Source: Octopus sinensis
Lineage: Eukaryota
NCBI RefSeq assembly: GCF_006345805.1
Contig: NW_021836129.1
Location: forward strand, 1-64,000
DNA: 64,000 nucleotides
Direction of reading: 5' to 3'
Both the position numbers and the translations under genes were made by a program. The notes beneath the pieces are model-generated. The model saw only the letters and a list, made by a program, of their open reading frames with translations, had not been told where the DNA came from and searched no databases. Below are positions 3,061 through 63,598 of the stretch, piece by piece. How positions within the stretch are numbered: position 1 is the first letter of the stretch; every line of letters starts with the position of its first letter.

Positions 3061-4861
3061 GTTTTTTAATTCCTAAGATTAACTTATAAATTCTTCACCT
3101 AAACATAGAAAACCAAAATGTCATCATTCCCGCCACAAACATCTTCCACCAACGAATAGTTCACAAAAACTGAGTTAAACAGTCATCGTTAGCAAAAAAT
3201 CACGGATAGGACAGTGCATTCCACGTCACTCCGTAACAAAATATTAAGACCTACAAAACTATACAATCTTCATTATTACCTGATAAATCCATATTTTAGA
3301 TTTATAATTTTAAACTGAAATAAGGGTATTCCTTTTTAAGTGGAGTCTCCCCTTTTTGAATATAAAAGTGCAATCTACATTATTATTTTATTAAATATAA
3401 AATAATATTTCCGACATAAAAGATATTGATAAAATTCTCTGAAGTTTAGGGATTGAGCAACCTACTTTCTCATCATCGATGTCGAGTTTAATTTGTAAAT
3501 CTCAATTTTTTATTTAATAAATGTGATAGGATTTTTTAATTATCAACTTATTAAAGAATTTTATTTTTTAAATAAAATCTAGAAATTAAACAGTTTAATG
3601 AATAATCTAAAAATTACTCTCTGAAAAATATCAAAACCTTCTCATTTGAAGTGGTACAATTGGTTCTTCTGCATTTCCAATAAAATTATATAATTCAGAA
3701 AAAATTTAAAAACTTTACTTTTTGAAGAAATTTAGAACTTTAATAAAAATAAATTAACAAAAAACCTTATAAATAATTTTAAACACGAATAGAAGAATCT
3801 TGTTATTATTTTTGGATAGATTATATATAAAGTAACTATTTTCTTTTTTATCCTGGTCATAAAAAAATACAAATAACATTCTCTCTATTTTTAAATGAGC
3901 CTGTTGTAACCAATAAAACGGAGGAAGATGTGCTGATGTGTTAGGGTATTGACAATAAACAATAATCATTTTATTCATTACCTGTTTTTTGATTAGTTCC
4001 AACAAAAATCTAAAATAGTGTTAGTTAGATTGTACATAAGAAGATTATCCATAATTTTAATATAATTATTATTTTCAGCTTTTGAAGGAAGATTAAATTC
4101 CCAGAAATATAGAATACATGTTTTTCGTCAACAAAACCTGAATTTTTATTCCCCAATTTATTCACCGCCATGTGAGTATACATCTAAATATGACTGTATT
4201 AATTTGAAATTATAATAAATTGAATATTGGCGATTATTATTTTTCTCTTCGTCATAATACGTGAATTCTTACACATTAATATTTATCAGTTTTACCATTT
4301 GAGTCATGAAGTGGAATAAGAGATGAATTACTGAAGCTGTGGGTTTCATTCATCGTTTTTTTGAATAAATAATTCGTTAATATATTGATATAATATATAC
4401 GCATTTTGAATTATTGCGATATTAATATTTCCGGATTGAGTTTATGATTTAAATATTTTAATTTATTTGATTCAAGTACATCAAAGGAGATCACAAACTA
4501 GGGCCAATGGACAGCTTCAAAGTTTATGTCATTCCTTTGTGAAAAGATGGGACTGATTGTTGACCAATTATTGAAAGGATTACTAAAACAAGTGATGTAG
4601 AAAATCTCTTTAGTCAACTATTTTTAAAAGAACTCTGAAGATTAACAGTTTTAATATTCACCCAAACAAGTCCTTTCCTGACATTTAGTCACCAGAAAGG
4701 ACTAGACTCCACCTATTAGGATATTTATACAGAAAATGGGAAAGAGATTTTTGTAGTTTCTCTTTGTTGAATATAAAGGAGCAATACTTGATTACAAAAT
4801 TAATTAAATAAAATAGAAATCCTTTTTGTAAAATCAAATTAAAATACAAAATCAAAGTCAT

Positions 4862-5621
4862 CTAAATAAATGGGATTCCGATCCAGGTAGTATTCCTATA
4901 TACCTGGTATTGTGATCCAAAAAATGACAGTAAAAGAGCTTCTTCGTTATTAATCCGTTTCTTAAAAAAATAAAGCATCCAACAAAAAAACAGAACAGTC
5001 GAAAACGGATTAACCAACGTAATCTATAACAATAATAACAAATCTTGAATATCTGAGTCCCAACAGAGAAATAAAAAAATCCAACATAAGCAGGATGCCG
5101 AAAATACTTCTAGACTCCATTTTTTATTAAATCATGATCCCGACGTAGTTTGAATTCTATTTGATGACTATAGTTACTCCCGAGTGTTAGGATCGAGACC
5201 TTTCTCAATAAATCTGCCAACAAAGAAATCAATATTCCCAAAATCGATAAAATTTTAAAAATTTCTCTAAAGCCTTGGAAATATAAAAAAAGATGAAAAA
5301 CCGGGAAATAAGAAAATAGAAACATAATATTCAAAAATTGCTATTCCCATCGCATGAAAGTAATCTCCATTTGTAAAAAGAAACGATTCGTTCGAAAAAT
5401 CATAAACTTTTGCAACATTGGCACATATAAATTCTAAATAATGAAACATGCACAGTTGTATGAGAAATATTCCAAATAGTATATGCTTTGATCAAAATAG
5501 TACAAAAAAGAGCCCAATGGACAAAGCTAATCCCAAAATCGTTAAGTTTTTTTTATAGTCTACAAAAATTGAATTAAAAATGAAACGTTTTTATATTCAG
5601 AATAATTATTTTGAGGTCCAT
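4862..5621 (-). pseudogene. ICMT: Isoprenylcysteine carboxyl methyltransferase (ICMT/STE14) pseudogene
   Basis: Spliced translation FHYLEF..NESFL..FP|G..LRK..LGSNYSH..DHDLIKNGV*KYFRHPAYVG..GTQ|..NP..RINNEEALLLSFFGSQY..GIPFI matches ICMT as I recall it. Lesions: TAG at 5110-5112, TGA at 5489-5491, and intron 5024-5052 begins AT instead of GT. Intact 28-nt intron at 5274-5301. Confidence 0.85.
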
Positions 5622-6471
5622 TTTTTAGGATAAAATAAACCGAAATTGTGTCAAAGAAAATTAAGAATGCCAAATAAGCATTCTTGAGGTAAAAAATAAG
5701 TATAATTGAAGAGCTTAATAAAAAAGAAATCAATGAGAATATTAATGAAGTATTGTGGAAATCGTTCTAATTTTTTATTATAAATAAAAAAAACGTTAAA
5801 AATCATTTCTGGTCAGTCCACAAGAAGTGATAATCTGGTATTTAGAATTTATTTATCAAACACGATTTCATTTTAATTTGAAATAAATTTTAATAATATT
5901 ATAGTATTGAAATAATTTATTACCAACATAAAACTAATCAACGTAGAGCCCTATAGATTTCTACAACCAGTATATAGAATATTCAATTTATAGATTGGAA
6001 TAAAAGATTTATTTATTAGGAATCTGTAGTTCGTTATGTGCAACTTCTTTCTGATAGTGTCGATGTTTTCTCTTTTCAAGAGAGTGTTAATGATCATCTT
6101 ATCTTACGAGCAGGGGAAATCCCTTATTTGGACATTTACTCTGTTAGAAAATGTTGGATCAAATGAACCCAAAGTAGAGGAATTATGGAATCGACTAATC
6201 GACCTCATCAACAAATCTCTATCCCCTTTCAAAGCATATTCCACGTTTTATAATAAATAATCTCGCCAACTCTGACATTGTGGCAATGATAGAGTTTCAT
6301 TAACCGTGCTTACTAGTTCAAGGAAATAAGACCAGGAACAAAAGACCGGTGTGAAAATACGGAACACTATCGATGCCCTGATAAGTTACCAAGCACAGAT
6401 TGAGAAGGAAATGCCCAACTTGACCATTATTGCGTGCTACTACATAAATACGGAAAATCTCAGTGTGTTTA

Positions 6472-6643
6472 GTTTATAAGACACTGACGAGAGCTGGTGA
6501 GTCATGTGGTCGAAGAATGTGTAGGGACTCTGTCCACCACGGGACATTTCACCAACTTTATTTTCTCAATAGATCTATGTAGTTGGGAAAAGCCAGATTG
6601 CTAGATAAAGTGCGGAGTGGCCATGATATGCGCTCTAAACTAT
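6472..6643 (+). pseudogene. DNAH1: Axonemal dynein heavy chain (DNAH1-like) C-terminal fragment
   Basis: YKTLTRA|28-nt intron 6497-6524|GTLSTTGHFTNFIFSIDL..PDC*IKCGVAMICALNY; TAG at 6602-6604 where Trp is expected; paralogous to 41616-41770. Confidence 0.85.
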
Positions 6644-6649
6644 ATTAAC

Positions 6650-7417
6650 CTAAATGCGCGATCGTTCTCAGCCTGCAATCACTCTCAACCGGTGACATTA
6701 TTTAATTAACAACTGGATTATTTGAGATATTAGTCGAGTCGTCGTCTTCACTTTATCTCCGTTTTTTAGTCTTATTAAACTCTCATTTCTTTATATTGTC
6801 CGCATTGAAGTTTTTGTTAATTCTGGTTTGGATTCCGCGAAATATTCTCCTCAATTTCTGTGCGAGTTTGTGACTTTATTCTAGAATGTCAAATTTACTC
6901 TTTCGTTACTGTCTGGGAACTACAAACTTATTTTTTTGATCTTCTTCTAGGCTTGGTGGATACCCTGTAGTTTAGAAGTGACTGCGTAATCGACTTGATA
7001 TCACGATATGGTTTATTTAGTTTATTTTTTCGACAAGTCTCGTCTCTAATGTGCTGTGAAATGATGCTTGCGGCTGCATTTATCCATTTGATTTGTTCGT
7101 ATATTTGTACCCACTACGTTCCCATCGAGTTATCTTCCTTGTTATGTGGCCTGTTGGGTAACAAAGAAAAGTACAGAAGAGGGGAAATAATCCTGTGGTA
7201 AATAAGAGTGATTAAGTTTAATGCGTTTGCTCTCAGTCAATTTTCTTCCTTTTCGAGCCAGCGCTTGGCTCTGCGGTCATTCTCAGTTTGATGGGCACAC
7301 TCGGCAAAGCTTACTCCGTTGTTCCGTTTATAAACCAATCCATTAGGGATTCTTCCGGCCGGACCATTCCAAACTTATGTTTTGCACATATATTCTCCAA
7401 TGTTCTCCAGATAACCA
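6650..7417 (-). mobile_element. Degenerate insertion, possibly LTR-retrotransposon gag-like fragment
   Basis: Absent from the paralogous block near 41610; flanked by 17-nt direct repeats; minus strand has CAKHKFG..EESLMDWFING and a CSRKHH..H Cys/His motif. Weak similarity only. Confidence 0.3.
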
Positions 7418-7725
7418 CTCTAAACTATATTAACTCGTCATTCGTTTTTGAGAATTGGTTTGTTTAACACTTTTTAATTAGTCTAAACTATTAACATTTG
7501 ATTCATCGCTAATTTCATTATTTGGATTTTCTCACACTTTCTATTGCTTAGTTAAGACCTCTCACACTTTATTTTTTATGTAAATGCTTTAAAAGGAATA
7601 ATCTGAGATGTAATTTTTTTAATGCTTACATTATCTGGAAATTCATCATGTGTATTTTTTTAGTTTATTCCTATAATCTGTTTATATATTAAAATTTTCG
7701 GTTTTGCAAATTGGTTTGTTTATCG

Positions 7726-13449: not shown

Positions 13450-14577
13450 ATGGCACAAAATCGAGAAGTCTCCGAAAATTCACAAGAAAATGGTACAGAA
13501 GACATTTGCATAAACAGACAAGGAAGAGGACATTACGGAAAATATTCAATGGAAAAACGGAAATTGATCATAGACACACACGATAGAGATTGGCGCTCTT
13601 TATGCAGGTCTTTGGGAGTGAAAGAAAGGACCGCATATTATTGGATTAAAAATAAAAAAATTGAATTACTTCCTAAAGGAGGAAAGATTTGGAGTAAAAA
13701 AAGTGAAGAAATTATATCTGCTCTATTAACTTGGATTGAATGCGATTGCCAGATCTCATTGGTCGAATGTACTGAAAAAATTCAAGCTCAATTCAATGTT
13801 ACTGTTTGTGTAAATACAGTAAAAAATTGGCTTGATGGACAATTAATTTCATTGAAATCAATTCGGCCAGTCACAATAAACATGAATACAGAGGAAAATA
13901 AAATAAAAAGAATGGAGTATTTAACACGTCTTTTGAATGCGAGATCTAAAGGAAGAACTATAATTTGGATAGATGAGTCAAATTTTAATTTATTTTGTCG
14001 TCGTAAAGAAGGACGTTCAAAAATTGGATGTCGGTCTATTGTTCTTGCACCCAGTAGCAGAGGGTCAAATTTACATTGTATAGCTGCAATGTCATCGTCA
14101 CAAATATATAATTTTAAGTGCAGAAGAGGCTCATATACAGGGGAGTCCTGTAAAACATGGTTTAGGCAACTTATTAATGAATGTGATGCATCAGGAGTTA
14201 CACATCCAACATTCGTAATTGATAATGCTCCTATTCACAGTCAACTTGAGTCTGTAATAAATCCAGGAGAAAATAGTGAATTATTAAGACTAGCGCCATA
14301 TTCTTATTTAATCAACCCAATAGAACTTGCTTGGAGTTCATTCAAAGCTGAAGTAAAGAAGAGAATTCGTGAAAATATGGATATAATTATAAATTATAAA
14401 AAAAATGCAGAGGGACTGTCAATAACCGAATTCAGAATGAGAATCTTGGAAAGGATTGCAATTGAGGCAAAAGAAGTATTAACTCCACAAAAGTTAATGG
14501 AATTCTCGAATCATGTGGAGAGATATTACCCCTCAGTTATTCGATGTGAAGATTTAACTGACAATTCTTATTTGTAA
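13450..14577 (+). CDS. IS630/Tc1-like transposase, 375 aa, DD33E
   Basis: WIDESNF / VIDNAPIH / PYSYLINPIE triad with 33 residues counted between the second D and E; N-terminal HTH-like region. Confidence 0.95.
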   Translation: MAQNREVSENSQENGTEDICINRQGRGHYGKYSMEKRKLIIDTHDRDWRSLCRSLGVKERTAYYWIKNKKIELLPKGGKIWSKKSEEIISALLTWIECDCQISLVECTEKIQAQFNVTVCVNTVKNWLDGQLISLKSIRPVTINMNTEENKIKRMEYLTRLLNARSKGRTIIWIDESNFNLFCRRKEGRSKIGCRSIVLAPSSRGSNLHCIAAMSSSQIYNFKCRRGSYTGESCKTWFRQLINECDASGVTHPTFVIDNAPIHSQLESVINPGENSELLRLAPYSYLINPIELAWSSFKAEVKKRIRENMDIIINYKKNAEGLSITEFRMRILERIAIEAKEVLTPQKLMEFSNHVERYYPSVIRCEDLTDNSYL

Positions 14578-15967: not shown

Positions 15968-16390
15968 CTAATTATCGGCAGAGGACAAGATGGAATGGCA
16001 ATTCCCACGCAAGATGGCTATTGATATGCGTTGGGAAAGCCATGTCCGTTCTCGATGATCGTTTTTCCTTCTGCTTGCCAGATTCCCCAATTTAATGAGA
16101 AATTTTTTAGTCTTGGGACCGAGGACACCCGAAGTCTCCACTGCGACCGGGGCGAAGATATAACGGTGCAATAAGGCGCCGTATTTTTTGATCTTCAGTG
16201 TTTCTGCCAGGTTAGCTGCGGAGCCCGGCTCTGAAGCTGACGTCAAGATGTTCCCGGCGGAGAAGTTATCCGTACAAGTAGCGTCCCAGATGAGAGACTT
16301 GCCATTTTCAAATGGGAAGGTCGTTAGACCATCAGGACGTTGAAATCTAAACTCATTTCCAAGTTGAAATCTAAACTCATAATATGTCAC
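15968..16390 (-). mobile_element. CRE-like non-LTR retrotransposon 3' fragment (PD-(D/E)xK endonuclease)
   Basis: RPDGLTTFPFENGKSLIWDATC..AETLKIKKY..FAPVAVETSG..QRISIAILRGN; 5'-truncated. Confidence 0.85.
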
Positions 16391-17899: not shown

Positions 17900-18765
17900 C
17901 AGGGGTCGGCAAATACTTTTGGAGAAGAGCCAATTTTGAACATTTTTGGAAATTTCGAAAAATTGAAGAGCCACCTTTTACCACTTGTCAAAAATTTTAA
18001 TTCATAAAATTAAATAGACATTAATTTAAAAAATAATTAAAAATTCATTTTAAAAAATTAAATTAATTAGACGCATTAATGAGAAATGTGATTCCTCATT
18101 TCTTTGGAGAGTTGGTTAATTTCTAGGTCGTAAGTCGTTAATTTTAATCTGAGGTTAGATTCCAAATTCGAATCTGTAATTTTGTTCCTTAATTTCGATT
18201 TATATAATTCATATGAGAAAAACTTTGTTCACACATATAAGTGGACCCGAATATTGTAAAAAATTCCGTATGCAAATTTTTTTAATTCATAATAAGAATC
18301 TGGAAGAGAATTCAAAGTTTCGAGAATCACATCTTCAAGTTTCTTTTGTATAACATTAATATCATTTTTAATTTTACCAGAAAATGTTTCTGTTTCAAGG
18401 TTTCAAGTAATTCTGAAAGACGAATAAATTTTGATGCCCATAATTCCTTACATGTCAAGTCCAATAGCTGCATTTCGAACTCAGCTGCGTTGATTTCAAA
18501 TGGCAATAAATTTAAATTGCGGACTTTAGCACTTAGGGGGTTTATAACGAACGATAGTGTTGCTTTTTCTTTTCTAAAATCCAATATTTGCAGTCCTGGC
18601 ATTGTCAGACCAGCATTTAAGAGCAGAATTCTCGAACTGATTATTCTTTGTAAGTTCTTCTACAGCTTTCTTTCGGGAATCACCCAAATTAAAGACATCC
18701 AGCTCAAAACGCCCAGTAATATTTCGACACAAAACAGAAAATATTAACATTTTAATACTCCCCAA
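17900..18765 (-). mobile_element. Buster-type hAT remnant (duplicate of 2199-3060)
   Basis: TIR CAGGGGTCGGCAAA; same motifs as copy 1. Confidence 0.8.
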
Positions 18766-20834: not shown

Positions 20835-21230
20835 TAGTCAGAATCGTTGAATAAATTTGCAATTATTTTTGTGAAGAACAAGTTGTATGGTCTTAATAAT
20901 GTCAAATCAGCATCACATGTGTGTTCTATCGTCTTCTAAAAGTTACAGTTGAACCGCTGCCCCAATAGGAATCCGCCCCAAATACAAAGGTTATGATAAT
21001 TGATACCATTTTTTCAACTTTTTCTTTAATTACTTTAAATAAAATAACACTTAAAAATTAAAAATCCATTTTATTTATTAAATAAAAAAGTAATCGCTAA
21101 TTTCCCTTCCAATTACATTTTTCGTCAATTTCATGCTTCGTTCATTTTAAAAACATAATATTCACTAGTACGCTGAATAATGAATTTTCTAAAAGATTCA
21201 TTATATTCATCGTGTCTTTTATGTTATAAT

Positions 21231-23011
21231 TAGGGCAATTTAAGTTAAAAAAGTTAAAATATATGAAAATGTGTATTTTGGCTTAAAAGTAAAAATAAAG
21301 TATTTTTTAAATGAAATAGTTACTTATTAAAGAAAAAAATAAAGTTAAAAAGTTAAAAAAAATTTTTTTATAAAGTTAAAAATTTTAACTTTATTTAAAA
21401 TAGCGCGTGGGTGTTTAGTATGCCAAGAACTGCAAAAACAATGTATTTTAAGGCAAAAAAAATTGTTATTGAATATCCGCTGGAGTTTTTATTACGAGAG
21501 AATGGCGAGTTGCAATGTCAACTTTGCTTATGCACAGTCAGGTGTGAGAAAAAGCATTTTGTGAATTCTCACCGAGAATCGAAGAAGCACTCAAATTTAT
21601 TAAGTTTTTACAAATTAATATAATTTTTAGAGAATAATTTCTATCAGCCTTGTTTGGACGAGTTACCCAATGATGACTGGTCAATGCAAGTCACTAAAGC
21701 ATTTATTCAATGCGATATACCCTTGCATAAATTGACTATGCCTCCTCTAAAGAATTTATTCAAGAATACTTCTTTGCCTCTTCCTTCCCAATACAAAGCA
21801 AGAATGTGCGTTAAACAATTGAAAACTGAATATATTGTATTATTTCAAGAAAAGTTTAGGTTTATGAATATATAATTTTTTAGAAATCAACTTGTATTCG
21901 CCATAAGTGACGAGGTCACTATTCGTAGTCAAAAATTTGTTGCAGTTTTAATGGGGATACTTAAAAATCCCGATAAAACTTATTTGATTTCTTTCGTAAA
22001 AATTGATAAAACTTCTACCAAAGAAACAATTATTCAAATTGTTGACGATACGATTAAATGCGTTTTAATTGAAAGACAAAATTTCCTTCTCCTAATAACA
22101 GATTCCGCTAAATATATGCTAGCAGGTTTTAATTTAACATATAATTATAGCTGGAAAAGTTCTTAAGCTTTTATATCCAAGGTTATTTCACGTAACTTGT
22201 GTTGCTCATCTGATGCATAATTGTTCAATGAAAATCAGGACTATTTATCCTGAAATTGATTCTCTTATTGCATCAATTCAAGCGGCAATAACAAAAAATA
22301 ACAAGAGAAAACGACTATTTAATGAAATTGGAATTCCACCTCATGTAGTTTTAACTAGATGGGGTACTTGGCTAACTGCTGCATTTTATTATGCAAAAAA
22401 TTTAATACATGTGATAAACATTTTCAAAACAATTCCTGATGATGGAATCATTGTTCAGGCTGCAAAAAATAGCCTAAGAGATGAATCTCTAGTAAAAAGC
22501 TTAAGTTCTATTGTTAGAAATTATTCGACAATTCCAGGTAAAACTAGTTTAATAATAGCAGAATTATTGTGCAAATTTGAAAGTTCTCACTCCTCAATAG
22601 AGTTAGCTTACAATGAGCTAAAGAATTTAAAATTTGACGACGAATCAGATATAATTGAAAAATATTTGAATGAACGATTACAAAAAAATGATTTATGTCA
22701 AATTATAAGAATGACAAATTCATCAATTTCTCCTGAAGAATATTGTATGCTTTTAAAGTGTCAGCCTTCATCCTCTTCCATAGAACGATGCTTCTCTCAA
22801 ATTAAAAACTTTATGAGGGATAACAGAAATTTTAATATTGAAAATATAGAGAATTATGTTATATGTTTGTATAATAAATGATTCTTAAGTTAAAATTTGT
22901 TAGGTTAAAATTTTTGTTTTATAGGTTAAAATTTGGTTATTTTTAGGTTAAAAAGTTAAAATTTTTAGGTTAAAAAATCGAAGTTTTTAGGTTAAAAAAA
23001 AAATTGCCCTA
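21231..23011 (+). mobile_element. Full-length hAT transposon (CGGBP1-like family) with intron-containing transposase
   Basis: TIR TAGGGCAATT, perfect 8-bp TSD GTTATAAT (21223-21230 and 23012-23019), subterminal GTTAAAA repeats. Confidence 0.95.
21420..22881 (+). CDS. hAT transposase, 461 aa after splicing introns 21604-21630, 21860-21883 and 22126-22150
   Basis: Removing three GT-AG introns (27, 24, 25 nt) joins four ORF-track pieces without a stop: CQLC..HRESKKH zinc finger, ISDE, TDSAKYM, TCVAH, TRWGTW, SIERCFS. Confidence 0.9.
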
Positions 23012-23142
23012 GTTATAATACACAATTTCAGTATCATTACATCTAAAATATGAGTCACCAAATGTTCAAATTGAATATTTTCGTAAATATTTTAACTGAA
23101 TTTTTGTTGGCAAAATTCTTTTCACCAGATATTGCTCTAAAA

Positions 23143-24227
23143 CAGGCCTGGCCAACCCAAATCGCATCGCGGGCCACTTTGTCCAAATGAATCCTTTCCG
23201 CGGGCGCATATACATGTACATACTAAGGATAGATATCAAAACAACACAGATAATATCAAAACAACACAGATAAGATTTTATTTAGTAAAATAGCATTCAG
23301 TCCAATTATACGTATCAATGAGAAATCTGTTTTTCTTTATCTTCACTTAATTTTTTCAAATCAACTTCACAATTACTAGTTGCACATCTTAATTGGTTTT
23401 CTAAGTTTTTATCTGTTAAAGAAGATCTATATCTACTTTTACTAAACTTTAATTTCGAAAAGAATGATTCACATACGTAAGTAGATCCAAAGGAGCTTAC
23501 AACTCTTTGTGCAAAAATTCTTAAGTTGGGATATTTTTCTGCAGTCACATATTTGTTATAAAAGTCAATTTTGGATATAGTAGGATAAACAAGTCTTAGT
23601 TCACTGTTGCACTGTAGGTCAATTATTTCCGTCTGCAAAGTATTTGAAACAATAGAAACGTCAACATGAAATGGAGAAGAAAATGTTTCAAACATTTTCT
23701 CATATTTTTTTAGTTCCGAGAATCGACTGTCAAATGCTGCAGCAAGATTTTTTATTTCATCAGCGTACTTGAAGAAATTTTTACAATGGCTGATTTTAAA
23801 TTGATTTAGCGTTGGAAAATGTTGATCATTTCCATTTCTTATTTGACATTCAAACAATGACAATTTCATTCGAAATGCTTTGACTTGATGGCATGCATTA
23901 GTAATCAAATTATCCTGTCCTTGTAACTCCTTGTTTAATTGATTAATTTTTTCGGTTATATCTACCAAAAAGCACAGATCTAGCATCCATTCTTCATCAT
24001 TTAATTCAGTTAAAATTTTCCTTTTCTTCATATTGATAACAGCTACAAAAATAGATAAACTTTAAAATTTATTAAACTTATAAAATTTATCTTTATTTAT
24101 TAAACTTAAGAAAAATTTATCTTGAATGTATTTATAGGTTAACTACATACAAAATTTCTCTCGCGGGCCGCACCAAACTCCATCGCGGGCCGCATGCGGC
24201 CCGCGGGCCTTGGGTTGGCCAGCCCTG
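23143..24227 (-). mobile_element. Buster-type hAT deletion derivative
   Basis: TIR CAGG.CTGGCCAACCC, perfect TSD CTCTAAAA (23135-23142 and 24228-24235); 238-aa C-terminal ORF (W.LDLCFLVDI..FGSTYVCESFFS). Confidence 0.95.
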
Positions 24228-31659: not shown

Positions 31660-32710
31660 ATGATTCTGATTGTCCTGTTGATGCTACAATACACATCAAG
31701 TATTATTTTATTGACACCAAATAGGTCCCGGTGAACTGAAGGTGAAGTATGATAAGAATATAGTAATCTATTTTTATTTTAATTCAGATGTTCATGTTGG
31801 ATGCTGTCAAAAATGTTGAATGATTATTTAACTAGCGTAGGCACTGTCACACCTAGTGAATATTTCGTTTGTCAATGAAGGAGAAGATATTTCTGTTGAG
31901 ATTGTTGAGTTTGAACTCCGTGTCAGTCAAATTGTAGTTCAGCTAGTGATGAAGGATATCATGTTATTAATAGAGTTGGAAGATTGAATGTATTCCTTAA
32001 TAGTTCAACGAATGGTTAAGGTAAATATAACACATTTATAGTCGATGGAATGTTTAACGATTCCAAATGTCAAGTATATTCAGTGTTTTAATATAAGCAA
32101 TATAAACCCGGAATTATCATATACAAATTACTCAAAATAATGAATTTTGAAGATATTGATGACCCTGACAGTATTTTAAACCCGGAAAATAAATTGTGGT
32201 CTTTTTATTTGTAATTATAGAAATGTTATCCCAAGTCCAGAATTGAATCAAAAATTCAGAGAATTAAGATTTGAAAGAGAAAGTATTGTTGAGGCATTGA
32301 GACTAAATGAAGAAAATACAAGTGAACACCAAAAAATTAATTTTGAAGATGATGAAAATATTGACAATACAATTGGAAACCAAGAAACTAATTCCGAAGA
32401 TGATGAAAATATTGACGATACGAGTGGAAGCCAAGAAATTAATCCCGAAAATGAAGAAAATACAAACAATACCATTGGAGACCAAGAAATTAATTCTGCA
32501 GCTCAAAACAATACAGTTAGTGGTGCAGAGGTCGGTAAAGGAATCAGGAAAGGTATATTGCTTCTATGTCTTTTCCCTTTTTGGAATAAGGGTGTAATAT
32601 ATAATAGTGGATATGAGTTTTTATTTCATGGCTGGTGCAGTCTTGTGCATGCTAATTCTTCTTTAATCCCAATACTTTTACTAATTCAGGACACAATAAC
32701 TAAATTTTAA
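31660..32710 (+). CDS. Orphan secreted or surface protein with acidic 17-aa repeats and 7 micro-introns
   Basis: Introns 31700-31724, 31763-31787, 31815-31840, 31920-31942, 32015-32041, 32074-32097 and 32196-32220 give one open frame from MILIVLLMLQYTSS into the 32243 ORF; three 51-nt repeats near 32335-32487; TATAAAA about 25 nt upstream. Confidence 0.75.
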
Positions 32711-38385: not shown

Positions 38386-38720
38386 TTATGTCCAGGCCGA
38401 ACGGATAGCTTGTGCGTTGCTGCGCATAATTGTAACCGAAATTCTTTGTCTCAGCCAAGAGGATTCGTGTCCATCCATGTTTCTCCGAGAGATAAGGAGA
38501 CCGACGTCTATCAAGAACTTGGCTGTTTGCGGGCCGAAGGATCCGGAGGTCTCGAAAGCCAAAAGGACAAAGTAATGTTGGGCAGTGGGTTGTCTGTACT
38601 TATCGACTTTGTGGGCTTCCCCCCCCCACCTGTCCAGACCGACTGGTTCAAGTACATTCGGGAAACCGGCAGCATTAAGTGCTCTCGAGATGACGTCGTT
38701 GAGTGCCCCGTGACGAGGTA
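38386..38720 (-). mobile_element. Third CRE-like LINE 3' fragment, internally deleted
   Basis: RHGALNDVISRAL.AAGFP.VLEP.GL..FETSGSFG..QRISVTIMRSN; the RPDG/WD segment is missing. Confidence 0.85.
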
Positions 38721-39049
38721 ATTCTGCTATTTGATATAAAAAGGTCACTTTTTTTTGGTTTTGAATTTTCGATTTTATAAAAAAATGTAAAATACTTTAT
38801 TCCATGTTAAGAATAAATTTAAGACATACAGTCAACCTTCGTTAATCCGAAAATTCAAATCGCTTTCCCTTCGGATTATGAAGAAATCTAAAATTTATAT
38901 GAACGTTAGATAAATGATCAGATTAGTGATCAAATTACTAATCTGTTTATAAACACAATTATTTGTAGAAAAAATCGAATAAAGTTTCTTTTTATAGTAT
39001 TTTTTTAATTAATTTTTGTAAATCATCCGAGATGTGTTTCAAATTTTTT

Positions 39050-41615: not shown

Positions 41616-44600
41616 TTAATAGTTCAGAGCGCATAAATAATCTGGCTCTTCCCAACTACATAGATCTATCGAGAAAACAAAGTTGGTGGAATGTCCCGTG
41701 ATGGACAGAGTTCCTACACATTCCTCCACCACATGACTCACCAGCTCTCGTCAGTGTCTTATAAACTGACAAGGAGGCGTCATAATTTTTATTTTCTGTC
41801 GGAATCAGCCAGATTGGTGGCATTTCCACATACAGTTCCTTCGGTCTCGACTCCACTCGACGTCCCCCGTCTCATTGACCCCCCTCCATAAACAAGCCCG
41901 TAATCTAATACCCACTCAAAGGAGGACTGGATATGTCCTCTCCTTCCAACACCTACACTGTGCTCACGGCCATACTTTAAAAGCGAAACTTATTTTATCA
42001 ATTAAAATCACGTTCTTTCGAGCATAGTTTTAGAGAGTTCCCGTCAAGAAAGCCTGCGGAAAAAAGAAACCCGATAAAAAAACAGAGAATACATATTTTT
42101 CCCACATCAAGGCACTCTATTGGTGTACAAACTCTGTGCCATGTCCTTCAACTCCTGGGAAATGACAACCAGTCCTTTGACAGCCTTGAGTAAGTATTCC
42201 AAACACCTTCTAATGACACCAAGAAGACGATTCTAACTGACATATAATATTATCAACTATGGCTTTTTGGATGAGGGAAGTGTTCATTGACTCTTCGTAA
42301 AGGACGGGGTACTTTGAGGATATTTCCACTATGCTGAATTCAAGGGGAAGAATGGCGAAGATATCTCTGACAAGTTTGTCCACAATCTCAATCATAAACT
42401 AATAAACAGACATTTCAGACGAGTCTTCTGGTATTCTGGCACTTTTGTTTTGTGCGAAAGTGATATCTACATTCTCGTGCAGTCCGAATATCTCCGGGCT
42501 ATCATTGATAGGCAGGTCTCTTATATAAGTCAAATACCCCTGGCAACTAAAATCATTAACCTCACTCTGTGGTCCGTCGAAGGATAAGGTTGGAAAAATA
42601 CTCTTGTTTTGGAAAAAGTGTATTTCTCTTCAAAGACACTGTCGCTGTAAGAGTCCACCAGCAAGTAGGCGACTGTCCTTCTGTTCCAGTCGTCGGATAA
42701 GATAACTACATGAAACAAGTTAAAAGAGCAGATTTTTAAACGCAGGAGTCTATTTAAAAAAAAAGGTTAACCAATTTTGAATAATTGAAATAATTAATAA
42801 TAATAAACCTTATTTTGACACGAATTTAAAAATCATCATTTTGAGAAATGTACAATCAGAGGAGATTGGCTTTTATACCCCTGAGAGGCTCAATAGTCAT
42901 TTTGCTGCTATTTTGTAGTAGAAACGTGGAAAATCGAGTACTGGGGGGACTTATGAGCCAAACTCTAAAGTCTGTACACCTGATTTTAAAGTGACCCAAA
43001 ATAACTTTTTCCGGATCCAATTTTTCGATGAGTCTTTCCAACTGAGGCATCCAACTTTGTGCCAAATGACAGTTCTGGAAGACAACCCATTTCCAGTGCT
43101 CAATTTGTTCTCTCATAATCTCTTCGGCCCTCGGGCCTTGTCCTTGTCCAAGGGAAATTGACAAAAGTTTTTTAGAAAAGCGCATTTCCTCCGCGAATTT
43201 GTACAAATCCGCCGCGGGATCAGTTCCAGCCGAAATAATGAAGACGAGAGGAACGAAGGGAGACGAGTCCTTGAAGACCAGACTCAGGTGAGTAGTCTAG
43301 ACCGTTCCGTCACTCAAATTCACCTGAGGCTCGATAAAATGGCTTCCAAGGTTGTTGGAGACGTATTGCTGCATATTCGGGGTTATTTTATCAGACCGAA
43401 GACATTTGAGGACAATCATTTTCTGAAAGTCGTCGGGGGTTTTGTCCCAGAGAGCTGGCAGTGGATGGTTGTTAATAAAACTATAAGATATACTTGTGGG
43501 GATCTGAACTATCAAACTTATATTTATATTCGCAAAAATTGTCAATAAAGTGTTCGACTATTCCTTTAAATGAGTCCAGTGAGGCCAGTCCCTCCAATTT
43601 CTGTCGGAGAGCCAGTCTGGGGCGGGGTTCGGTTTTTGGATAGTCTTTTCGACTGAGCTCAACAGGAAATATCTCCACTCGTTCTAAAACTCGTTGAATT
43701 TTACGAACTCCTTTTATTTCTCCAAAGTTCTGTTTGATTCGTACACAAACGAGTAATCCAAACAAGAGTCTTCCAATTCCTTCCTATTTGAATATTGATT
43801 CGTATTTATATGCCTCATTTGAGCATTATTGACAATCAACTGGTTCTTGGCATCTTCAAGGTCAAAAAGTTCCTCCGTCACGACAATCCGCAATAACTGA
43901 TCCTCGAGGCTTCTAAAACTGATAATGACTTTTATATTGAGGACTGAGGTGGGTCAATAAATAGTGGCCACCGTTTTGAGTTATTGGCGATGAGTGCATT
44001 TTCAATCGAAAAGTTGTCTTTAGGCAGTCCCGTAATTTGCCAATTCCGTATTTTTACCGGGTCCCCCATCGATGTCACGATCTCCGGGCGGTCAGTAATA
44101 GGGACCTTGCACTCAGTAAGGACTTTTAGACATTTCTCGTATAGAATAGCCCGATATTCATGCTTTAATAAAATTATTTAAGTTTTATACCGTGAATGGT
44201 CCCAAATAGGCAATCGACACGGCGGCTATCAAAATATCCCCCACAAAATTTTGTAACGTGTATTCCAAAGTCTCGACAGTCTGTTGCCACCGGGATTTCT
44301 CGCTGCCGAGTCCCCGTACCCATCGATGTAAGGACGTATCTTCCTTATGATGGCTTCGGGGATGTTGTCCTTGTCGTAGGTGAAAAGAGAGTCGATAAAT
44401 TTTTAAGGTTTTTGGAAAGGGTCTTTCCGGGCTCTCAAAAGTCGTCGACCTTGACTTCGGGAATGTAGGTGGGGACTTTTTCAAGCTTGACCACCTTCAT
44501 AATGCACACAGTCTCCATCACAAGTTTGACCCCATCGGGAGGACAGGACATAGCCTTTACTTCGAATACGTCATTCTTGTTGAGGGACTTGAAACTCGAT

Positions 44601-47600
44601 AAGGCGGCACTCTAATCTAAGACGTATTGTCCAACCATGATGAGGAGGGCTTCACTCAGTTCTCGCTGGGTATCATCGGCGATGTTCTGGCACTCATCTG
44701 CCTTTGCACATGCATCAGTTTCTTCCTTCTTTACATGAGCTCTTGTTTCTTCTGCCACTTTCTAGACTTGTTTAATAGCCCTCCTAACTGTGTCTTTCTC
44801 GATTTGGGAAAGCGTTCTGTTGGCTTCGTCCATTGCCTCTTCGAGTTGGGGTCTCAATTCGCTCAGACTTGACTGGAGGACGACAACTTCCTCAGAAGTA
44901 GTCATCAACTGAGATAACTTCCAAACCAATAGTCACCTTATCCAATCCCGTTTTTAGTCTGTTTTTGGCAGATACGACTTGAGATCTCTTGATTCCAAGC
45001 AGGGAAGAAAAAGAGGAGATCAATTCGAGATAACTAGTAGAAGTCACGTAGTTATGATGGTTTATTTCGATCAGGAATTTGTTGGACAGTTCAATCACAT
45101 TTTGGTGGATAAGTCGACAGGATTTTATCTATGACTATTTTATTCAGTCTTTACTATTCCTGAGATTGTTTCTTGGTCGTCTTTCAATTCAGGAAGATCT
45201 GTCAAGAACCTTTCAGCAACTGATTGGTAACCACTGTGTGCAGATTAGTTCTCACTCTCTTGGTGTATATCAAGTATAAATTTGTCTTGGTAGGCTGCAT
45301 CCCCATCTCACTACAAATTGGCTGCATTTGCTGATATATTTTGTCCAATTCTTCATTTCCGTAAAGATTTTGAACATCTCTTGAATTTAAAATGTTGTTG
45401 AGGCTCTCTAGGAATCCTTCGTCTTTGATCTGCCATTGAGGTCTCTTCAAGTCCCAACCTGTGTGTCATTGAAGAGAAACACAATCTGAGTCTCCTTTAG
45501 ATTAGCTTCCATGTTGAACGTGTAGTGCAGGGTGTCAAACATGCGGTCTACAAAAAATCTACAAAAAATTATTTTTTTATTTTTGTTACATTTAATTAAA
45601 CTTTTTAATTGTATTTTTAAATCGTGTTTGTTAATGTCACGTGCTTTTTCTGCAATAATAAAGAAACGATGCTTGAAAGATGAACGGAGAGTGTTTCTAG
45701 ATAAATGAGAACTTTTCTATTTTTACACAAAGGTTGATGGACATTGTTTGATATGTAACAATTTATCGCTATACCGAAAGAACACAACCTAAAGAGGCAT
45801 TATCAATCTAATCATCTATCATACAATTATTTCGAAGGCTGCTTATTAACCAAGAAGGTCCAATGCATGTTTCAAAAGAATTGCGAAAAAATTTATCTGC
45901 GTTACAGACTCATTTCACAAAAAGTCATAATCGAAGTACTGCATTAGTCACTACAAGCTATGAAATCAGCAGAATGCTTGCAGTAAATGGAAAATCATAT
46001 TGTGATGGTAATTTCATCAAGCAATGCCTTCAAAAAACAGCGAATATTATTTGTTCAGACGACGCCCACTTGTTTAAAGATATTTCATTAACAAGAAATA
46101 CTGTTGCCGAACACATTAATGAAATGGCATTGAATTTGAAACAACAATTAAAGTCTGATTTGTAAAAATTCGAATATTTTTCAGTTGCAATCGATGAAAC
46201 AGTTGATGTCGTTGGAATTGCACAATTAGCAATCTTTTTTAGAGCCTGTGATTCAGATTTTAATATTTATGAAGAATTTCTCGAACTGGTACCAATGCAC
46301 GATACTACTACAAGTAAAGATATCTTTATATAACTACTACAAATTCTCTTTGAATATGGGTTTGATTTGAAGAAGCTTGTATGTTTATGCACTGATGGTG
46401 CTCCGAATATGGTTGGACGATATGCTGGCGTTGCCGCCAAATTGCGAGCTAAAATACAAAAGGTAAATCCCGGGTCATCATTTGACAGAGGTCATCCCCT
46501 CAACACCGGCAGTTTAGTAAACTGCTGACAGATATTAATAATCAGTTCAGCGACATTCCTTTTTATACTCCAGTCCGCTGGTTGTCACTTCAGAAAGTTG
46601 TTAAAAATATTTTATTTGTTGAGATCGGAAATCATTTTATTTATGGAAATGAAAGGGCAAAACATAGACGAAATGAAAAGTCAAACTTGGATCAGGAGTA
46701 CTGTTGATGCACATAATGTAATGAATTTTTCTCAGTATGAAAAAAAACTAAAATCGTTGTTAAAGGAATTTCAAGAAAGATTTAATGATTTTTCGTCTTT
46801 TGAACAACAATTTTCATTATTCGCATCACCATTCTCTCTTAATGTTTCCAATGCAGATGAATGTTTATAAAGCTAAAAATTTGGAGGTTAGAATACCTGC
46901 TTTCTTTTCATATCTTCCGGGAAAGTTTAAAAACTTTAAAAAGTTTGCAACAAAAATCATTGCTATGTTTGGTTCGACATATTTGTGTGAACAGCTTTTT
47001 TCTTTTATGAAATTGATAAAAACTGCTCAAAGAACAAGATTAAATGATGAACATTTATCTTCTTTAATAAAAGTCGGAACTAAATGAATAGCTCAGCCTG
47101 ACATATCAAAAATTGTATCTAAAAAAAGATGTCAATCCTCTGGAAGCAGTTCTCACCAAAATTAAAGGGCGATGGTTGAATAATTTAGTTTCTTTTATTT
47201 TGATTATTCATCATTATAAATATCAGAATTAATCTTCCCTTAATGAGAAATTATTATAAATGCGGCCCTCGAAGCGAAATTGACACCTCTGTTGTAAAGA
47301 GTCTTGTTCGGAGTCGGAAGGAAAAAATTGAGGACATTTTGGTATATTTCAATGCATGCCGTAACAATCTGATCTACCTGTCAAAATCGATTTATGCTCA
47401 TCTGAATGATTCATCTTTACTTCTTAACCTGCCCACGTGCGTATGATTGTGCCGAATATGTGGCGGATGCTTGTGTCACTCATTTCCACAAAGGAGACCA
47501 TGTTGAAGCATCTCAAAAACCTCTGCGTCACCGCGTTCCTCCCCCCACCATGAGGACCCATTGCACAACAGAAATTAATGTCAATCAGTTTGCAAAAGTC

Positions 47601-53199: not shown

Positions 53200-55079
53200 C
53201 AGTACGACCCCGGTTTGGGGCAGACCCCATGGGTGGGGCACCCTCGGGTTTTGGGGCACCCCCGCTTTTAGGGGCAGTTTTTGAAAACAGTAAATTTTTC
53301 ATTCTATTATTTATTTTTGATGACCCCGGTTTGGGGCACTTATTTAATTTATTTAATTACAAAATGTTAGTTTATTTATTAATTATTAATTAATACTATT
53401 ATTTCACGTGTTTATTTTGACTTTAGTATGGTTCGTAAAAAGAATTCAAAGATTAATTATGAAACAAAAATTAAAATCGCTAAAGATATAAAACATGGTC
53501 AATTTTCAGAAAGAGATCTTGCTAAAAAGTATAAAACGAGCAAAGGTATCTTTTTTAACTAATTATTAATTACAGGTACTATTTCTCGCATTAAACAAAA
53601 TTTTGTTTATTATTTTGACGCGGGATTAACTGAATCCGATAGAATCAAGGAATCACATGATCCAAATAATGAATTAGATAGATTAGTTTTTGAAACTTTT
53701 CTACGTCTGAGAGATGAATTTCTTCCAATTTCTGGAACTATCTTAAAACTGATTGCAAAAAATTATCTAAAAAGATAAATTATGAATCATTTAAGGCATC
53801 AAATGGATGGCTAGACCGGTTCAAGAAAAGACACGAGTTGCTATTTAAAACTATAAGTGGAGAAAAGAATTCATCTGACCTTTCTACGGTTTCCAATTTT
53901 TTTGCTGATTATGACAACTGTTTGGAAACTGTAGGAAGTGAAAATATTTTTAACTGTGATGAAACAGCTTTATACATAAAGCGAACGCCGTCGAAATCTT
54001 TTGTTCAATTTAATGACAAATGCAATGGAATTAAAATGAGCAAAGAGAAAGTTACCCTTCTCCTTTGTTGTAATGCACTTGGTGAAAAGTTAAAACCTCT
54101 ATTAATTGGAAAATTCAAATCTCCTAGGTGTTTAAAAAATTTTAACGCTGAGGATCACGGAGTACTATATGCTGCATCAAAAAATTCGTGGATGACTAGT
54201 GATATTTTTGGGAAATGGTTATGGAAAGTAAATCAAGATATGATCAATGAAAAGAGAAAAATTGTCTTAATACTGGATAATGCGAGCTGTCACAGAAATA
54301 CAGAATATTCCAATGTTTATTTACTTTTTCTTCCCAAAAATACGACCGCTTTAATTCAACCCCTAGATATGGGAATAATAAAATCCTTCAAGTCCCTCTA
54401 TTTCAATAAACTGATTGATTTTACTCTTATATTTGAAAAAGAACAGCTTTCTGATTTGAATTTGAATAATGTCAATCTTAGACAAGTCATTACAGTTGTC
54501 GGGGAGGCATGGAAAATGATGTCAGAGACAACGATAATTAATTGCTGGCAGAAAATAAATGAAAACAGATCAAAAATTTCGGATAATGTACAGTTGGACG
54601 AAGAATTAATAGATGACGTGATTTCAGATGTTATTTCAATGGATTCGACAGATATTATTGAGGACAAAATTACTTATGATGGATATGAATCTAAAAAATC
54701 ATCAATTAAAGAAATCATAAACATCGTGAATTCTCTAGAAGATAATATTTTCAGTACATGTCCACAATTTTTGAAAATCTACTACGAATTTAGAAAAAAC
54801 CTATCAGGAGAACTGAAAAAAAACCAATTCGGTGAGAAAATTACTGATTACTTTTAATAGTATTTTTTGTTGGATTTATTAAAATTTTTAAATTTTATTA
54901 AGAAAGGACTATGTTAGAATTTTTATTAATATTAAATAATTTTAATTTATAGTCTAAAATGCAATAAAAATCTATTGAGGAGAAAATAAAAGCAAAAAAT
55001 CTTTACCCTCGCATTTTGGGGCACCCCCGCTTTTTAGGGCACTATGATAAAAATGCTGCCCCAAACCGGGGTCGTACTG
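53200..55079 (+). mobile_element. Full-length pogo/Tigger element
   Basis: Perfect 24-bp TIR CAGTACGACCCCGGTTTGGGGCAG, TA on both sides. Confidence 0.95.
53428..54857 (+). CDS. pogo transposase (DD29D) with 30-nt intron 53546-53575 and one 1-nt frameshift in an A6 run near 53757-53762
   Basis: MVRKK..TSK|GTISRIK..ASNGWLDRFK..NCDETAL..LDNASCH..QPLDMGII; 466 aa if one A is restored. Confidence 0.85.
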
Positions 55080-60252: not shown

Positions 60253-61303
60253 ATGATTCTGATTGTCCTGTTGATGCTACAATACACATCAAGTATTATT
60301 TTATTGACACCAAATAGGTCCCGGTGAACTGAAGGTGAAGTATGATAAGAATAGAGTAATCTATTTTTATTTTAATTCAGATGTTCATGTTGGATGCTGT
60401 CAAAAATGTTGAATGATTATTTAACTAGCGTAGGCACTGTCACACCTAGTGAATATTTCGTTTGTCAATGAAGGAGAAGATATTTCTGTTGAGATTGTTG
60501 AGTTTGAACTCTATGTCAATCAAATTGTAGTTCAGCTAGTGATGAAGGATATCATGTTATTAATAGAGTTGGAAGATTGAATGTATTCCTTAATAGTTCA
60601 ACGAATGGTTAAGGTAAATATAACACATTTATAGTCGATGGAATGTTTAACGATTCCAAATGTCAAGTATATTCAGTGTTTTAATATAAGCAATATAAAC
60701 CCGGAATTATCATATACAAATTACTCAAAATAATGAATTTTGAAGATATTGATGACCCTGACAGTATTTTAAACCCGGAAAATAAATTGTGGTCTTTTTA
60801 TTTGTAATTATAGAAATGTTATCCCAAGTCCAGAATTGAATCAAAGATTCAGAGAATTAAGATTTGAAAGAGAAAGTATTGTTGAGGCATTGAGACTAAA
60901 TGAAGAAAATACAAGTGAACACCAAAAAACTAATTTTGAAGATGATGAAAATATTGACAATACAATTGGAAACCAAGAAACTAATTCCGAAGATGATGAA
61001 AATATTGACAATACGAGTGGAAGCCAAGAAATTAATCCCGAAAATGAAGAAAATACAAACAATACCATTGGAGACCAAGAAATTAATTCTGCAGCTCAAA
61101 ACAATACAGTTAGTGGTGCAGAGGTCGGTAAAGGAATCAGGAAAGGTATATTGCTTTTATGTCCCTTCCCTTTTTGGAATAAGGGTGTAATATATAATAG
61201 TGGATATGAGTTTTTATTTCATGGCTGGTGCAGTCTTGTGCATGCTGATTCTTCTTTAATCCCGATACTTTTACTAATTCAGGACACAATAACTAAATTT
61301 TAA
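60253..61303 (+). pseudogene. Duplicate of the 31660 secreted-protein gene with a lost splice donor
   Basis: Intron-4 donor GT is AT at 60513; the next GT (60515) would shift the frame. Confidence 0.6.
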
Positions 61304-62357: not shown

Positions 62358-63598
62358 CAGGGGTTCTCAACTTTTTTAGCTCATGGGCCAAATCGATAAT
62401 TAAGAATATCTTTACGGGCCGCACAAAAAATATTTTATGTTATTAATGAAAAGAAGGCTTTATTAAGTAATAAAAATCAATGCGAGACTTGATTCTGTTT
62501 GGCGTCTATTATTTTGTCAAAACAGGGAGTAAAAGTCGAACACGATGTGCGTAAAAGTTGATTTAGGTGTCCATCAGTCAATCGATTTCGATACTTTGTT
62601 TTTATTTGCGTAAGTTTGGTGAAAAGAGCTTCACATGTATACGTTGATCCGAAGACTGATGCATTTTTTTGAGCATTATCGACCAAGTTCGGATATTTCC
62701 ACTGTGGAATTCGACCCCAAAAATCCAATAGTTCACTTGACTTAAATAGCGCGGTAAGTTGTAAATCTGCCTGCATTTCAATTAGTTCCAGTTGATATAT
62801 GTATGGAGCGGTTGCAGCATCTGCTTCCATAGGTGACAAAAATATTTTCATAATAGGTAAAGCTTCTTTAAAATCATTAAAACGTGTTTCGAATTCATCG
62901 ATTAAGTCACTAATAACGCAGATATATTTTTGTAGGATCCATCTTCCCTGTGATTTGAAAGTATTGGGAAATGAATGGTAACTCTACTTTCAATTTGTAT
63001 ATTCCAAAGGTGTAGTTTTTCGATAAATGCAGAAACCATTCCGTACAATTCATGACATAGTTTGCCCTTACCCTGCAAAGAAGTATTCAAAATTGAAAGG
63101 TGCGTAGAAATATCTACCATAAATGCTAAATCTGCAATCCACTCCTTATCAGTAAGCTGAGGATAAAATATCTTATTGTCAATAAAATGCATAATCTCCG
63201 GGAGAAGGTCATAAAATCTAAATGCGATTTAGTTTAAATTTATATAACCTTTTTAGACATGCTGCCCGACTCAACCATCGTACAGTTGTATGCATAAGCA
63301 AATCTCCATACTTGGCGTCAACATCCTCGAGAAATATCTTGAAATTCCGATGATTTAAAGCACGGGATCGAATAAAATTTACGATCGAAATGACCGTTTC
63401 TGTAACATGGTCCATTTTCATAGATTTCGCGGATAAATTTTCTTGATGCAGGATGCAGTGATGCCAAATCACAGGACTCAACTCATCATCTACTCGCCAT
63501 CCAGCTACGAGACCTTGAAACCCAGTTTTCCATCCAACCATAGAAGGACATCCATCTGTAGCAATTGAAAACATTTTTAAAGGATTCAAATGTGCCAT
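62358..63598 (-). mobile_element. Buster-type hAT (longer copy of 33765 element) with 31-nt intron 63218-63248; 5' end not present
   Basis: ATDGCPSM..HCILHQE..RALNHRNF..VRWLSRAACLKR|intron|FYDLLPEIMHF..WIADLAF..FGSTYTCE; shared frameshift near 62940. Confidence 0.9.

Follow-up and report, generated by a model that had tools for sequence, protein, structure and literature searches.

A stretch of 64,000 nucleotides from the Octopus sinensis assembly GCF_006345805.1 (contig NW_021836129.1, positions 1 to 64,000 of the forward strand; the whole stretch is called the window in the following) harbors at positions 21231-23011 a compact element of 1,781 bp that is very likely a structurally intact cut-and-paste hAT transposon, with a DUF659-type core, an Ac-like target site and a transposase gene that is divided into five exons by four GT..AG introns of 27, 24, 25 and 24 nucleotides. 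The element is bounded by perfect terminal inverted repeats (TIRs) and a perfect target-site duplication (TSD), and its transposase would comprise 453 amino acids after splicing, or 461 amino acids if the fourth intron is retained. The hAT type of transposon is well known; what is unusual are introns of less than 30 nucleotides that were apparently gained inside a mobile element. An earlier note on this DNA had taken the locus for an intact hAT transposon with three introns and not for the dead copy that its interrupted reading frames suggest. The intactness is supported by colinearity with related proteins, by gains in profile score, by introns of the size found in the host and by the Hermes-like fold of the family, but the number of introns has to be corrected, probably to four.

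How can a gene that appears to be broken into pieces encode a complete transposase? A mechanical list of open reading frames (ORFs) contains for the unspliced DNA four same-strand fragments between 21411 and 22881. Removing segments 21604-21630, 21860-21883 and 22126-22150 joins 21420..22881 into an ORF of 461 codons that ends with a TGA stop, which confirms the frame of the protein assembled in the earlier note by excision of introns of 27, 24 and 25 nucleotides. Segments 1 and 2 are divisible by three in length and contain a single in-frame TAA each, and segment 3 is frame-shifting. From left to right, the element and its predicted gene comprise the following features.

21223-21230, no strand: left TSD copy, GTTATAAT, the same as 23012-23019 (8/8) and fitting the motif nTnATnAn
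21231-21241, plus strand: 5' TIR, TAGGGCAATTT, complementary to 23001-23011 at 11/11 positions
21242-21419, plus strand: 5' subterminal region and 5' untranslated region, with RGTTAAAA five times in forward and once in reverse orientation
21420-21603, plus strand: exon 1, from the start codon (MPR...) through the C2H2 zinc finger; relatives start with MPK... and align with the N-terminus from residue 1 on
21604-21630, plus strand: intron 1, 27 nucleotides, GT..AG, phase 1, in-frame TAA, 11% GC, in a variable linker
21631-21859, plus strand: exon 2, linker and helical DNA-binding region (conserved ...AFLxADIPLHKL...)
21860-21883, plus strand: intron 2, 24 nucleotides, GT..AG, phase 2, in-frame TAA, 12% GC
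21884-22125, plus strand: exon 3, first half of the RNase H-like core, with SDEV at 21906-21917 (D147/E148) and TDSAKY at 22098-22115 (D211)
22126-22150, plus strand: intron 3, 25 nucleotides, GT..AG, phase 1, retention shifts the frame, 12% GC
22151-22537, plus strand: exon 4, with CVAHLMH at 22198-22218 (CxxH), TRWGTW at 22354-22371 (RW) and the start of the insertion domain
22538-22561, plus strand: probable intron 4, GTAAAACTAGTTTAATAATAGCAG, 24 nucleotides, GT..AG, phase 1, in frame, stop-free, 25% GC
22562-22881, plus strand: exon 5, rest of the insertion domain and C-terminal hAT-type region, with IERCFS at 22780-22797 (third catalytic E)
22879-22881, plus strand: stop codon TGA within exon 5, with AATAAA at 22873-22878
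22882-23000, plus strand: 3' subterminal region, with RGTTAAAA seven times in forward orientation
23001-23011, minus strand: 3' TIR, AAATTGCCCTA as read on the plus strand
23012-23019, no strand: right TSD copy, GTTATAAT

All GT..AG pairs at a distance of 15-80 nucleotides were listed exhaustively and tested for restoration of the ORF, and the resulting proteins were scored against a family profile that had been built without the window sequence. Few other pairs restore the ORF, and these remove second histidines of the zinc finger or conserved residues of the core, or score lower. The four-intron model (453 amino acids) reaches 512.7 bits, the best score of all models tested, and the three-intron model 500.1 bits. 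Starting from the latter, retention of intron 1 reduces the score to 495.9 bits and retention of intron 2 to 488.2 bits, so that the gain upon removal amounts to 4.2 bits for intron 1, 11.9 bits for intron 2 and 12.6 bits for intron 4. A 30-nucleotide variant of intron 2 yields 492.8 bits (7 bits less) and a 34-nucleotide variant, the sole alternative to intron 3, 484.6 bits (15 bits less). As a control, other in-frame GT..AG segments were removed from the exons, and in 28/28 cases the score dropped by at least 11 bits (all ≤501.5 bits). Moreover, in an alignment of 18 sequences the window protein is colinear with its relatives from Met1 to the C-terminus, and junction 2 (amino acids 137/138) and junction 3 (amino acids 218/219) are located in gap-free columns. 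Removal of intron 2 leads to a gap-free alignment with the 17 relatives and removal of intron 3 recreates YMLAAGKVLKLLYP, which matches the consensus YMxAAGxxLKxLYP without a gap; junction 1 falls into a variable linker. The introns have a GC content of 11-25% as compared to 31% in the exons, and in three of the four a yTnAy-like motif is found 10-14 nucleotides upstream of the AG, intron 2 having a single one at -20. Thus, as for U2-type introns, the segments carry GT..AG ends and their removal restores the frame and colinearity with intronless homologues. By our own estimate, an ORF of 453-461 codons without a stop, as obtained after splicing, would arise by chance with a probability of about 1e-16 in DNA of 31% GC.

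The ends of the element also have the properties of a hAT transposon. The matching TIRs and the perfect TSD that the earlier note had described are found at 11/11 and 8/8 positions, respectively, and about 0.005 such pairs of TIR and TSD are expected by chance in a 64-kb window with 32% GC (our own estimate). The length of the TSD is 8 bp, as in the complete relatives, and the perfect TIR of 11 bp lies within the range of 10-25 bp for the short TIRs of hAT elements (PMC3942097). The 3' TIR is identical to the 3' terminus of one relative (L002), and TAGGG[C/G] termini are common to relatives in other genomes. From 57 flanking 8-mers a target motif nTnATnAn emerged for the family (T2 in 44/57, A4 in 46/57, T5 in 46/57, A7 in 41/57), and the TSD of the element, G-T-T-A-T-A-A-T, satisfies all four positions. 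Since this motif contains nTnnnnAn, given as target consensus of the Ac family in the passage of PMC8961557 that cites Arensburger 2011, the target site is Ac-like; this consensus is satisfied by the window TSD as well as by the family flanks. The subterminal regions are rich in short repeats: RGTTAAAA occurs 12 times in forward and once in reverse orientation within the 319 bp of both ends (five forward and one reverse in the 189-bp 5' end, seven in the 130-bp 3' end) as compared to 21 times in the other 62 kb, a density about 100 times that of the rest of the window, and no forward copies are present in the coding region of the element. In analogy to known hAT elements these repeats are presumed to be the binding sites of the transposase. 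Hermes also contains short subterminal repeats at both ends, which are bound by its BED domains (PMC10368747). The subterminal motif differs from member to member of the family and is GTCAAAA or GGGCAGA in relatives. By analogy with Hermes and Ac, the transposase would bind to the RGTTAAAA repeats and the TAGGGCAATTT ends, excise the element and reinsert it at nTnATnAn sites, whereby the 8-bp duplications would be formed. As to the proposal that the element is probably young and potentially autonomous, the sole basis for a young age would be the 38 unmutated bases of termini and TSD and the sole basis for autonomy the structural intactness. A 20-nucleotide unit, ATATCAAAACAACACAGATA, is perfectly duplicated in tandem at 23233-23272, about 220 bp beyond the right end.

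From the N-terminus on, the predicted protein would comprise a C2H2 zinc finger, a DNA-binding region made up of helices, an RNase H-like DDE core, which is split by a helical insertion domain with the CxxH and RW motifs, and a hAT-type C-terminal region. The zinc finger and the D/D/E, CxxH and RW residues had already been pointed out in the earlier note, and in the 18-sequence alignment all of them occupy columns that are invariant or conserved to at least 90%. In the numbering of the 461-residue model the residues in question are D147/E148, D211, E430 (in IERCFS; E422 in the 453-residue model), C235xxH238 and R288-W289; E148, D211, C235, H238, W289 and E430 are invariant, D147 and R288 conserved to at least 90%. 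The zinc ligands C33, C36, H51 and H57, with the spacing Cx2Cx14Hx5H, are likewise invariant in the family alignment, and altogether the window protein retains 24/24 invariant columns. The Pfam domain DUF659, which in hAT transposases corresponds to the RNase H-like core (PMC3985635), matches residues 129-250 of the window protein with E 1.6e-8 and is detected in all 18 aligned members. For the dimerization domain Dimer_Tnp_hAT (PF05699) the Pfam search reported no match in the window protein at E≤1; the conserved motif S-x-E-R-x-F-S is present. Profile matches of the zinc finger are all weak and speak more for U1C than for BED (U1C in the PDB with E 0.004, Pfam zf-U1 in two members, zf-BED in one member with E 0.4), and a sequence-profile search of the PDB retrieved no transposase, just these weak matches to the U1C zinc finger. 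In addition, an AlphaFold model was analyzed for the relative P0001, which is 42% identical to the window protein (30-sequence alignment; mean pLDDT, the predicted local distance difference test score, of 90). The top 12 PDB matches of this model in Foldseek are all Hermes transposase (E 2.8e-9 to 8.5e-7, template modeling score 0.46-0.55), and it contains an RNase H core and a helical insertion of the Hermes type; at the level of the family the modeled fold is therefore Hermes-like. In the model the catalytic residues and those of the CxxH and RW motifs are distributed over strand 1, the positions following strands 4 and 5 and a late helix, as expected for an RNase H-type transposase; their equivalence to residues of Hermes is our inference.

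Judged by end-to-end homology, the window element is a member of a family of compact DUF659-type hATs that occurs in metagenomes and in genomes of invertebrates. Among about 5.8 billion proteins 39 relatives with 36-43% identity were found, most of them uninterrupted ORFs of 453-461 amino acids that cover 100% of the query, and the closest family members are only 42-43% identical to the window protein. At E≤1e-3 the family contains 11,088 cluster representatives, the best 150 of which are mostly 450-510 amino acids long and align end to end. Where members carry a name, it is "DUF659 domain-containing protein", as in aphids and Periplaneta americana. Relatives that are complete, with both TIR and TSD, measure 1.79-2.38 kb. 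They include L001 at 5598-7490, L005 at 3476-5524 and L016 at 305-2097 of large eukaryotic-looking ENA/JGI contigs. The TIRs of these copies read TAGGGCAACC or TAGGGCGATTTT, their TSDs GTAATGAG, GTGATCAT and GATATGAG; in L001 the reading frame is shifted close to the C-terminus. Another relative, L006, originates from a Tara Oceans marine metagenome, and the compact DUF659 hAT family therefore appears to be widespread among eukaryotes.

The ends of Ac read TAGGG/CAGGG, and the TIRs of the window element also start with TAGGG, a variant of the YAG with which the short TIRs of Hermes, hobo and Ac begin. Further similarities with these elements (2BW3, 4D1Q, 8EDG) are the 8-bp TSD, a target motif containing nTnnnnAn, the DDE, CxxH and RW residues and an RNase H-like core that contains a helical insertion domain. 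Differences concern the size, which is 1.78 kb and 453 amino acids as compared to 2.5-5 kb and about 600-800 amino acids (PMC3942097), the identity to Hermes of 11-13% in the structural match, with no sequence-level match in the PDB, the U1C/matrin-like spacing of the zinc finger, which is no recognizable BED, and the weak Pfam dimerization domain. The remark of the earlier note that the element is short for a hAT is therefore correct with respect to the canonical elements of 2.5-5 kb; as a peculiarity it does not hold, since 450-510 amino acids and 1.8-2.4 kb are the norm in this family. Because thousands of relatives encode 450-510 amino acids, small size is a family trait and does not indicate truncation. 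With the compact DUF659-type hATs the window element shares these lengths, end-to-end homology, the TAGGG[C/G] termini, the 8-bp TSD and the target motif. In contrast to the window copy, which is the only one with four introns of less than 30 nucleotides, most of these elements have uninterrupted ORFs. Several spliceosomal introns within the transposase gene of a mobile element with TIRs and an 8-bp TSD occur in other hAT elements too, such as BuT2, which has five exons (PMC3942097), Ac and Tol2. The introns of these elements are of conventional length, about 60-150 nucleotides in BuT2, as compared to 24-27 nucleotides here.

Introns of similarly small size are indicated elsewhere in the window. 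On the minus strand, at about 45465-41600, lies the relic of a DNAH1-like axonemal dynein heavy-chain gene, 40-45% identical to assorted animal dyneins, with GT..AG spacers at 45154-45129 (26 nucleotides), 44936-44909 (28), 44788-44762 (27), 44635-44612 (24) and 44190-44163 (28), which according to tblastn sit exactly at alignment gaps of intronless reference dyneins. As these spacers are 24-28 nucleotides long, the introns of the transposon belong to the size class of the host. The dynein relic contains a TGA at the position of a conserved Trp (about 44437-44435) and a TAA at the position of a Gln, its frame is shifted near 44420, and in comparison with the reference dyneins it has suffered three large internal deletions. 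Since the introns of ciliates are tiny and TGA and TAA are found at Trp and Gln positions of the dynein, a ciliate-type code (TAA/TAG=Gln, TGA=Trp) was considered. It was rejected because transposon ORFs of 339-375 amino acids and the ORF of 453 codons are free of TAA, TAG and TGA and also because the dynein, with its frameshift and its three large deletions, is a pseudogene. Furthermore, the window contains two diverged copies of pogo-like transposases (DDE_1/HTH_Tnp_Tc5), at 53428-54857 on the plus strand and at 20613-19850 on the minus strand. The copy starting at 53428 contains a 30-nucleotide GT..AG segment (53546-53575) with an in-frame TAA, the removal of which restores colinearity, and the paralogue (20613-20356, minus strand) is devoid of this segment; in both copies a frameshift is required as well, in an A-run directly behind the conserved ...SGT(I/L)L. 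The intron lengths of the hAT element thus fall into the range spliced by the host, as represented by the dynein relic with 24-28 and the pogo-like copy with 30 nucleotides. The minimum usually assumed for introns in animals is about 30 nucleotides (PMC13644364), and animal introns below this length have been reported only in dicyemids and myxobolid myxozoans (PMC13644364; PMC6736024). The window introns resemble the latter in their length of 24-28 nucleotides, their plain GT..AG ends, their AT-richness and, in 3/4 cases, an A-rich or yTnAy-like motif at -10 to -14. They differ in that the dicyemid and myxobolid introns reside in host genes and those of the window in transposon genes (hAT, pogo-like) that have intronless relatives.

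How did the introns get into the transposon? At 86 related loci no mini-introns were found at the positions of those in the window; 34 of these loci have an uninterrupted ORF of at least 430 amino acids and the other 52, mostly decayed copies, have none. The closest relative, L004, has a single GT..AG intron of 46 nucleotides in the same zinc-finger linker as intron 1 of the window element. Homology of the two is not claimed, as position and phase differ. When a neighbor-joining tree is rooted with members of the aphid type, the window protein is nested among intronless members and forms groups with L004 (bootstrap 56%) and with the intronless P0001 (78%). Because most relatives are intronless, gain of the introns, at least of introns 2-4, in the lineage of the window element would be more parsimonious, a view that has moderate support and has to be seen against a database biased toward intronless ORFs. 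It could be imagined, albeit with considerable doubt, that all four mini-introns arose de novo after the transposon had settled in a lineage with introns of about 25 nucleotides, and that they act as a host-specific lock and throttle; the pogo-like element in the same window can be cited as showing the same process of de novo gain. The lock would consist in full-length transposase being producible only in a host with short introns. As a throttle, incomplete splicing would lead to truncated proteins, for example a zinc-finger peptide of 70 amino acids if intron 1 is retained, which could dampen transposition by competing for the subterminal repeats, similar to the retention of intron 3 in the P element.

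What else could the locus represent? It would be a dead copy, if the interruptions were small insertions and nonsense mutations in a decaying hAT element and their likeness to introns were coincidental. The four ORF fragments of the unspliced gene would be consistent with this, as would segments 1 and 2, which are in frame and whose single TAA could each be read as a point mutation, the decay of many relatives, with 52/86 loci lacking an ORF of at least 430 amino acids, and the surroundings, which are a graveyard of transposon fragments. Decay by chance would, however, have to produce 4/4 segments with GT..AG ends, a coincidence that we estimate at about 1e-10 for four independent insertions, and these segments would have to be of 24-27 nucleotides like the introns of the host and far more AT-rich than the exons. 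It would also have to place them such that colinearity returns and the profile score rises when exactly these segments are taken out, whereas control removals lower it, and leave the remaining 453 codons without any stop or frameshift and with every invariant residue of the family, which makes a dead copy highly improbable. More credible, though still improbable, is an intact gene that has become immobile, that is, a single-copy gene, domesticated or stranded, which is spliced and expressed and which was co-opted or lost a requirement in cis. Introns and an intact ORF are to be expected of a transposase-derived host gene as well, and a single copy was seen, none being found in the public data searched. 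Domesticated hAT genes normally lose their ends, whereas in the window the TIRs and the TSD are perfect, the TSD fits the motif of the family, both ends keep their arrays of subterminal repeats intact and all catalytic residues are retained. The number of introns is a separate matter. Segment 22538-22561 corresponds exactly to an insert of eight residues, GKTSLIIA, in the window protein. This segment is probably a fourth intron, which is in frame and yields a protein of 453 amino acids when removed. The earlier note overlooked it because the ORF is not broken by it, and for lack of a stop its retention would still yield a protein of 461 amino acids. That the gene has only three introns and the segment encodes a lineage-specific loop is unlikely, but less so than the two preceding explanations: its removal is not forced, as it is in frame and stop-free, and with a GC content of 25% it differs less from the exons than introns 1-3 do. 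On the other hand, the insert occurs in 0/17 aligned relatives and corresponds exactly to a GT..AG segment of the length typical for the host, and its removal leads to the best score of all models.

Several observations weigh against an intact and mobile hAT with four introns and limit the confidence in it. Splicing is deduced from comparison of sequences, and expression and present-day mobility are predictions. A second copy, derivatives of the type of miniature inverted-repeat transposable elements and a paralogous empty site were searched for within the window and none was found; an exact look-up of the 222-amino acid product of the last ORF in a public gene index gave no record, and an exact search of metagenome contigs with junction 3, spliced or unspliced, gave no match. 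Intron 1 is situated in a poorly conserved linker and its removal is worth just 4.2 bits, and the segment of intron 4 could, as discussed, be a lineage-specific loop of eight residues. The examples for introns of the host were drawn from a pseudogene, and the position of the window protein inside the intronless clade has bootstrap values of 56-78% in a simple neighbor-joining tree. As to the protein, PF05699 matches are weak in 15/18 members (best E 0.0018), the zinc finger is not recognizably BED and the structure model is that of a 42%-identical relative and not of the window protein itself. Taken together with the evidence from ends, introns and protein, a structurally intact hAT transposon with four mini-introns is nevertheless the explanation we consider very likely.

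The window consists mostly of transposon remains. On the plus strand, at 13450-14577, an intact Tc1/mariner-type ORF (DDE_3) of 375 amino acids is located that, among named proteins, has its best matches in Octopus sinensis, with 61% identity, and in the orthonectid Intoshia linei, with 62%. This ORF could be a clue to a dicyemid host lineage or to sharing of transposons between parasite and cephalopod host. Together with the axonemal dynein, the size of the introns and the richness in repeats (PMC6736024) it points to a dicyemid, with a myxobolid myxozoan as alternative, though these are hints and not proof. Fragments of longer, Charlie/ZBED-like hATs, which are unrelated to the element studied here and have clear Dimer_Tnp_hAT matches, are found at 23315-24031, 62477-62851 and 63218-63598 on the minus strand and at about 46367-47087 on the plus strand, one of them separated from the right end of the element by only some 300 bp. 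The plus strand also contains two pairs of ORFs, nearly identical within each pair, that lie about 28.6 kb (32243-32710 and 60836-61303) and about 15.8 kb (2510-2842 and 18346-18747) apart, suggesting dispersed repeats or segmental duplication; the acidic, repeat-rich product of 155 amino acids has no Pfam match. Debris of retroelements, with repeated ...ETSGxxGP...WLxQRISxxIxRGN... tails and rve integrase cores (Pfam rve, E 1.5e-15), is present at 15968-16390 and 38386-38748 on the minus strand and in integrase-like ORFs of the first third of the window. Scans of the window for Rfam families and tRNAs gave no matches.

What do these findings mean for transposons in genomes with tiny introns? 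Where introns are shorter than 30 nucleotides, views based on ORFs or on standard gene finders will call intact transposons dead, and, as the hAT element and its pogo-like neighbor suggest, the activity of transposons in such genomes may be underestimated. With four mini-introns in the style of the host and many intronless relatives, the element offers a clean case for the study of intron gain. It also helps to define what an intron of 24-27 nucleotides needs to be spliced, a question raised for dicyemids and myxobolids (PMC13644364). The family to which the element belongs is a very compact lineage of hAT transposons, of about 1.8 kb and about 455 amino acids and with a zinc finger unlike BED, that is abundant in sequence data but labelled only as DUF659. 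As an intact member whose ends are known, the element would lend itself to functional studies in laboratory cells. If the introns indeed arose de novo and act as lock and throttle, the element would be a natural reporter for intron gain and for the minimal signals of ultra-short splicing.

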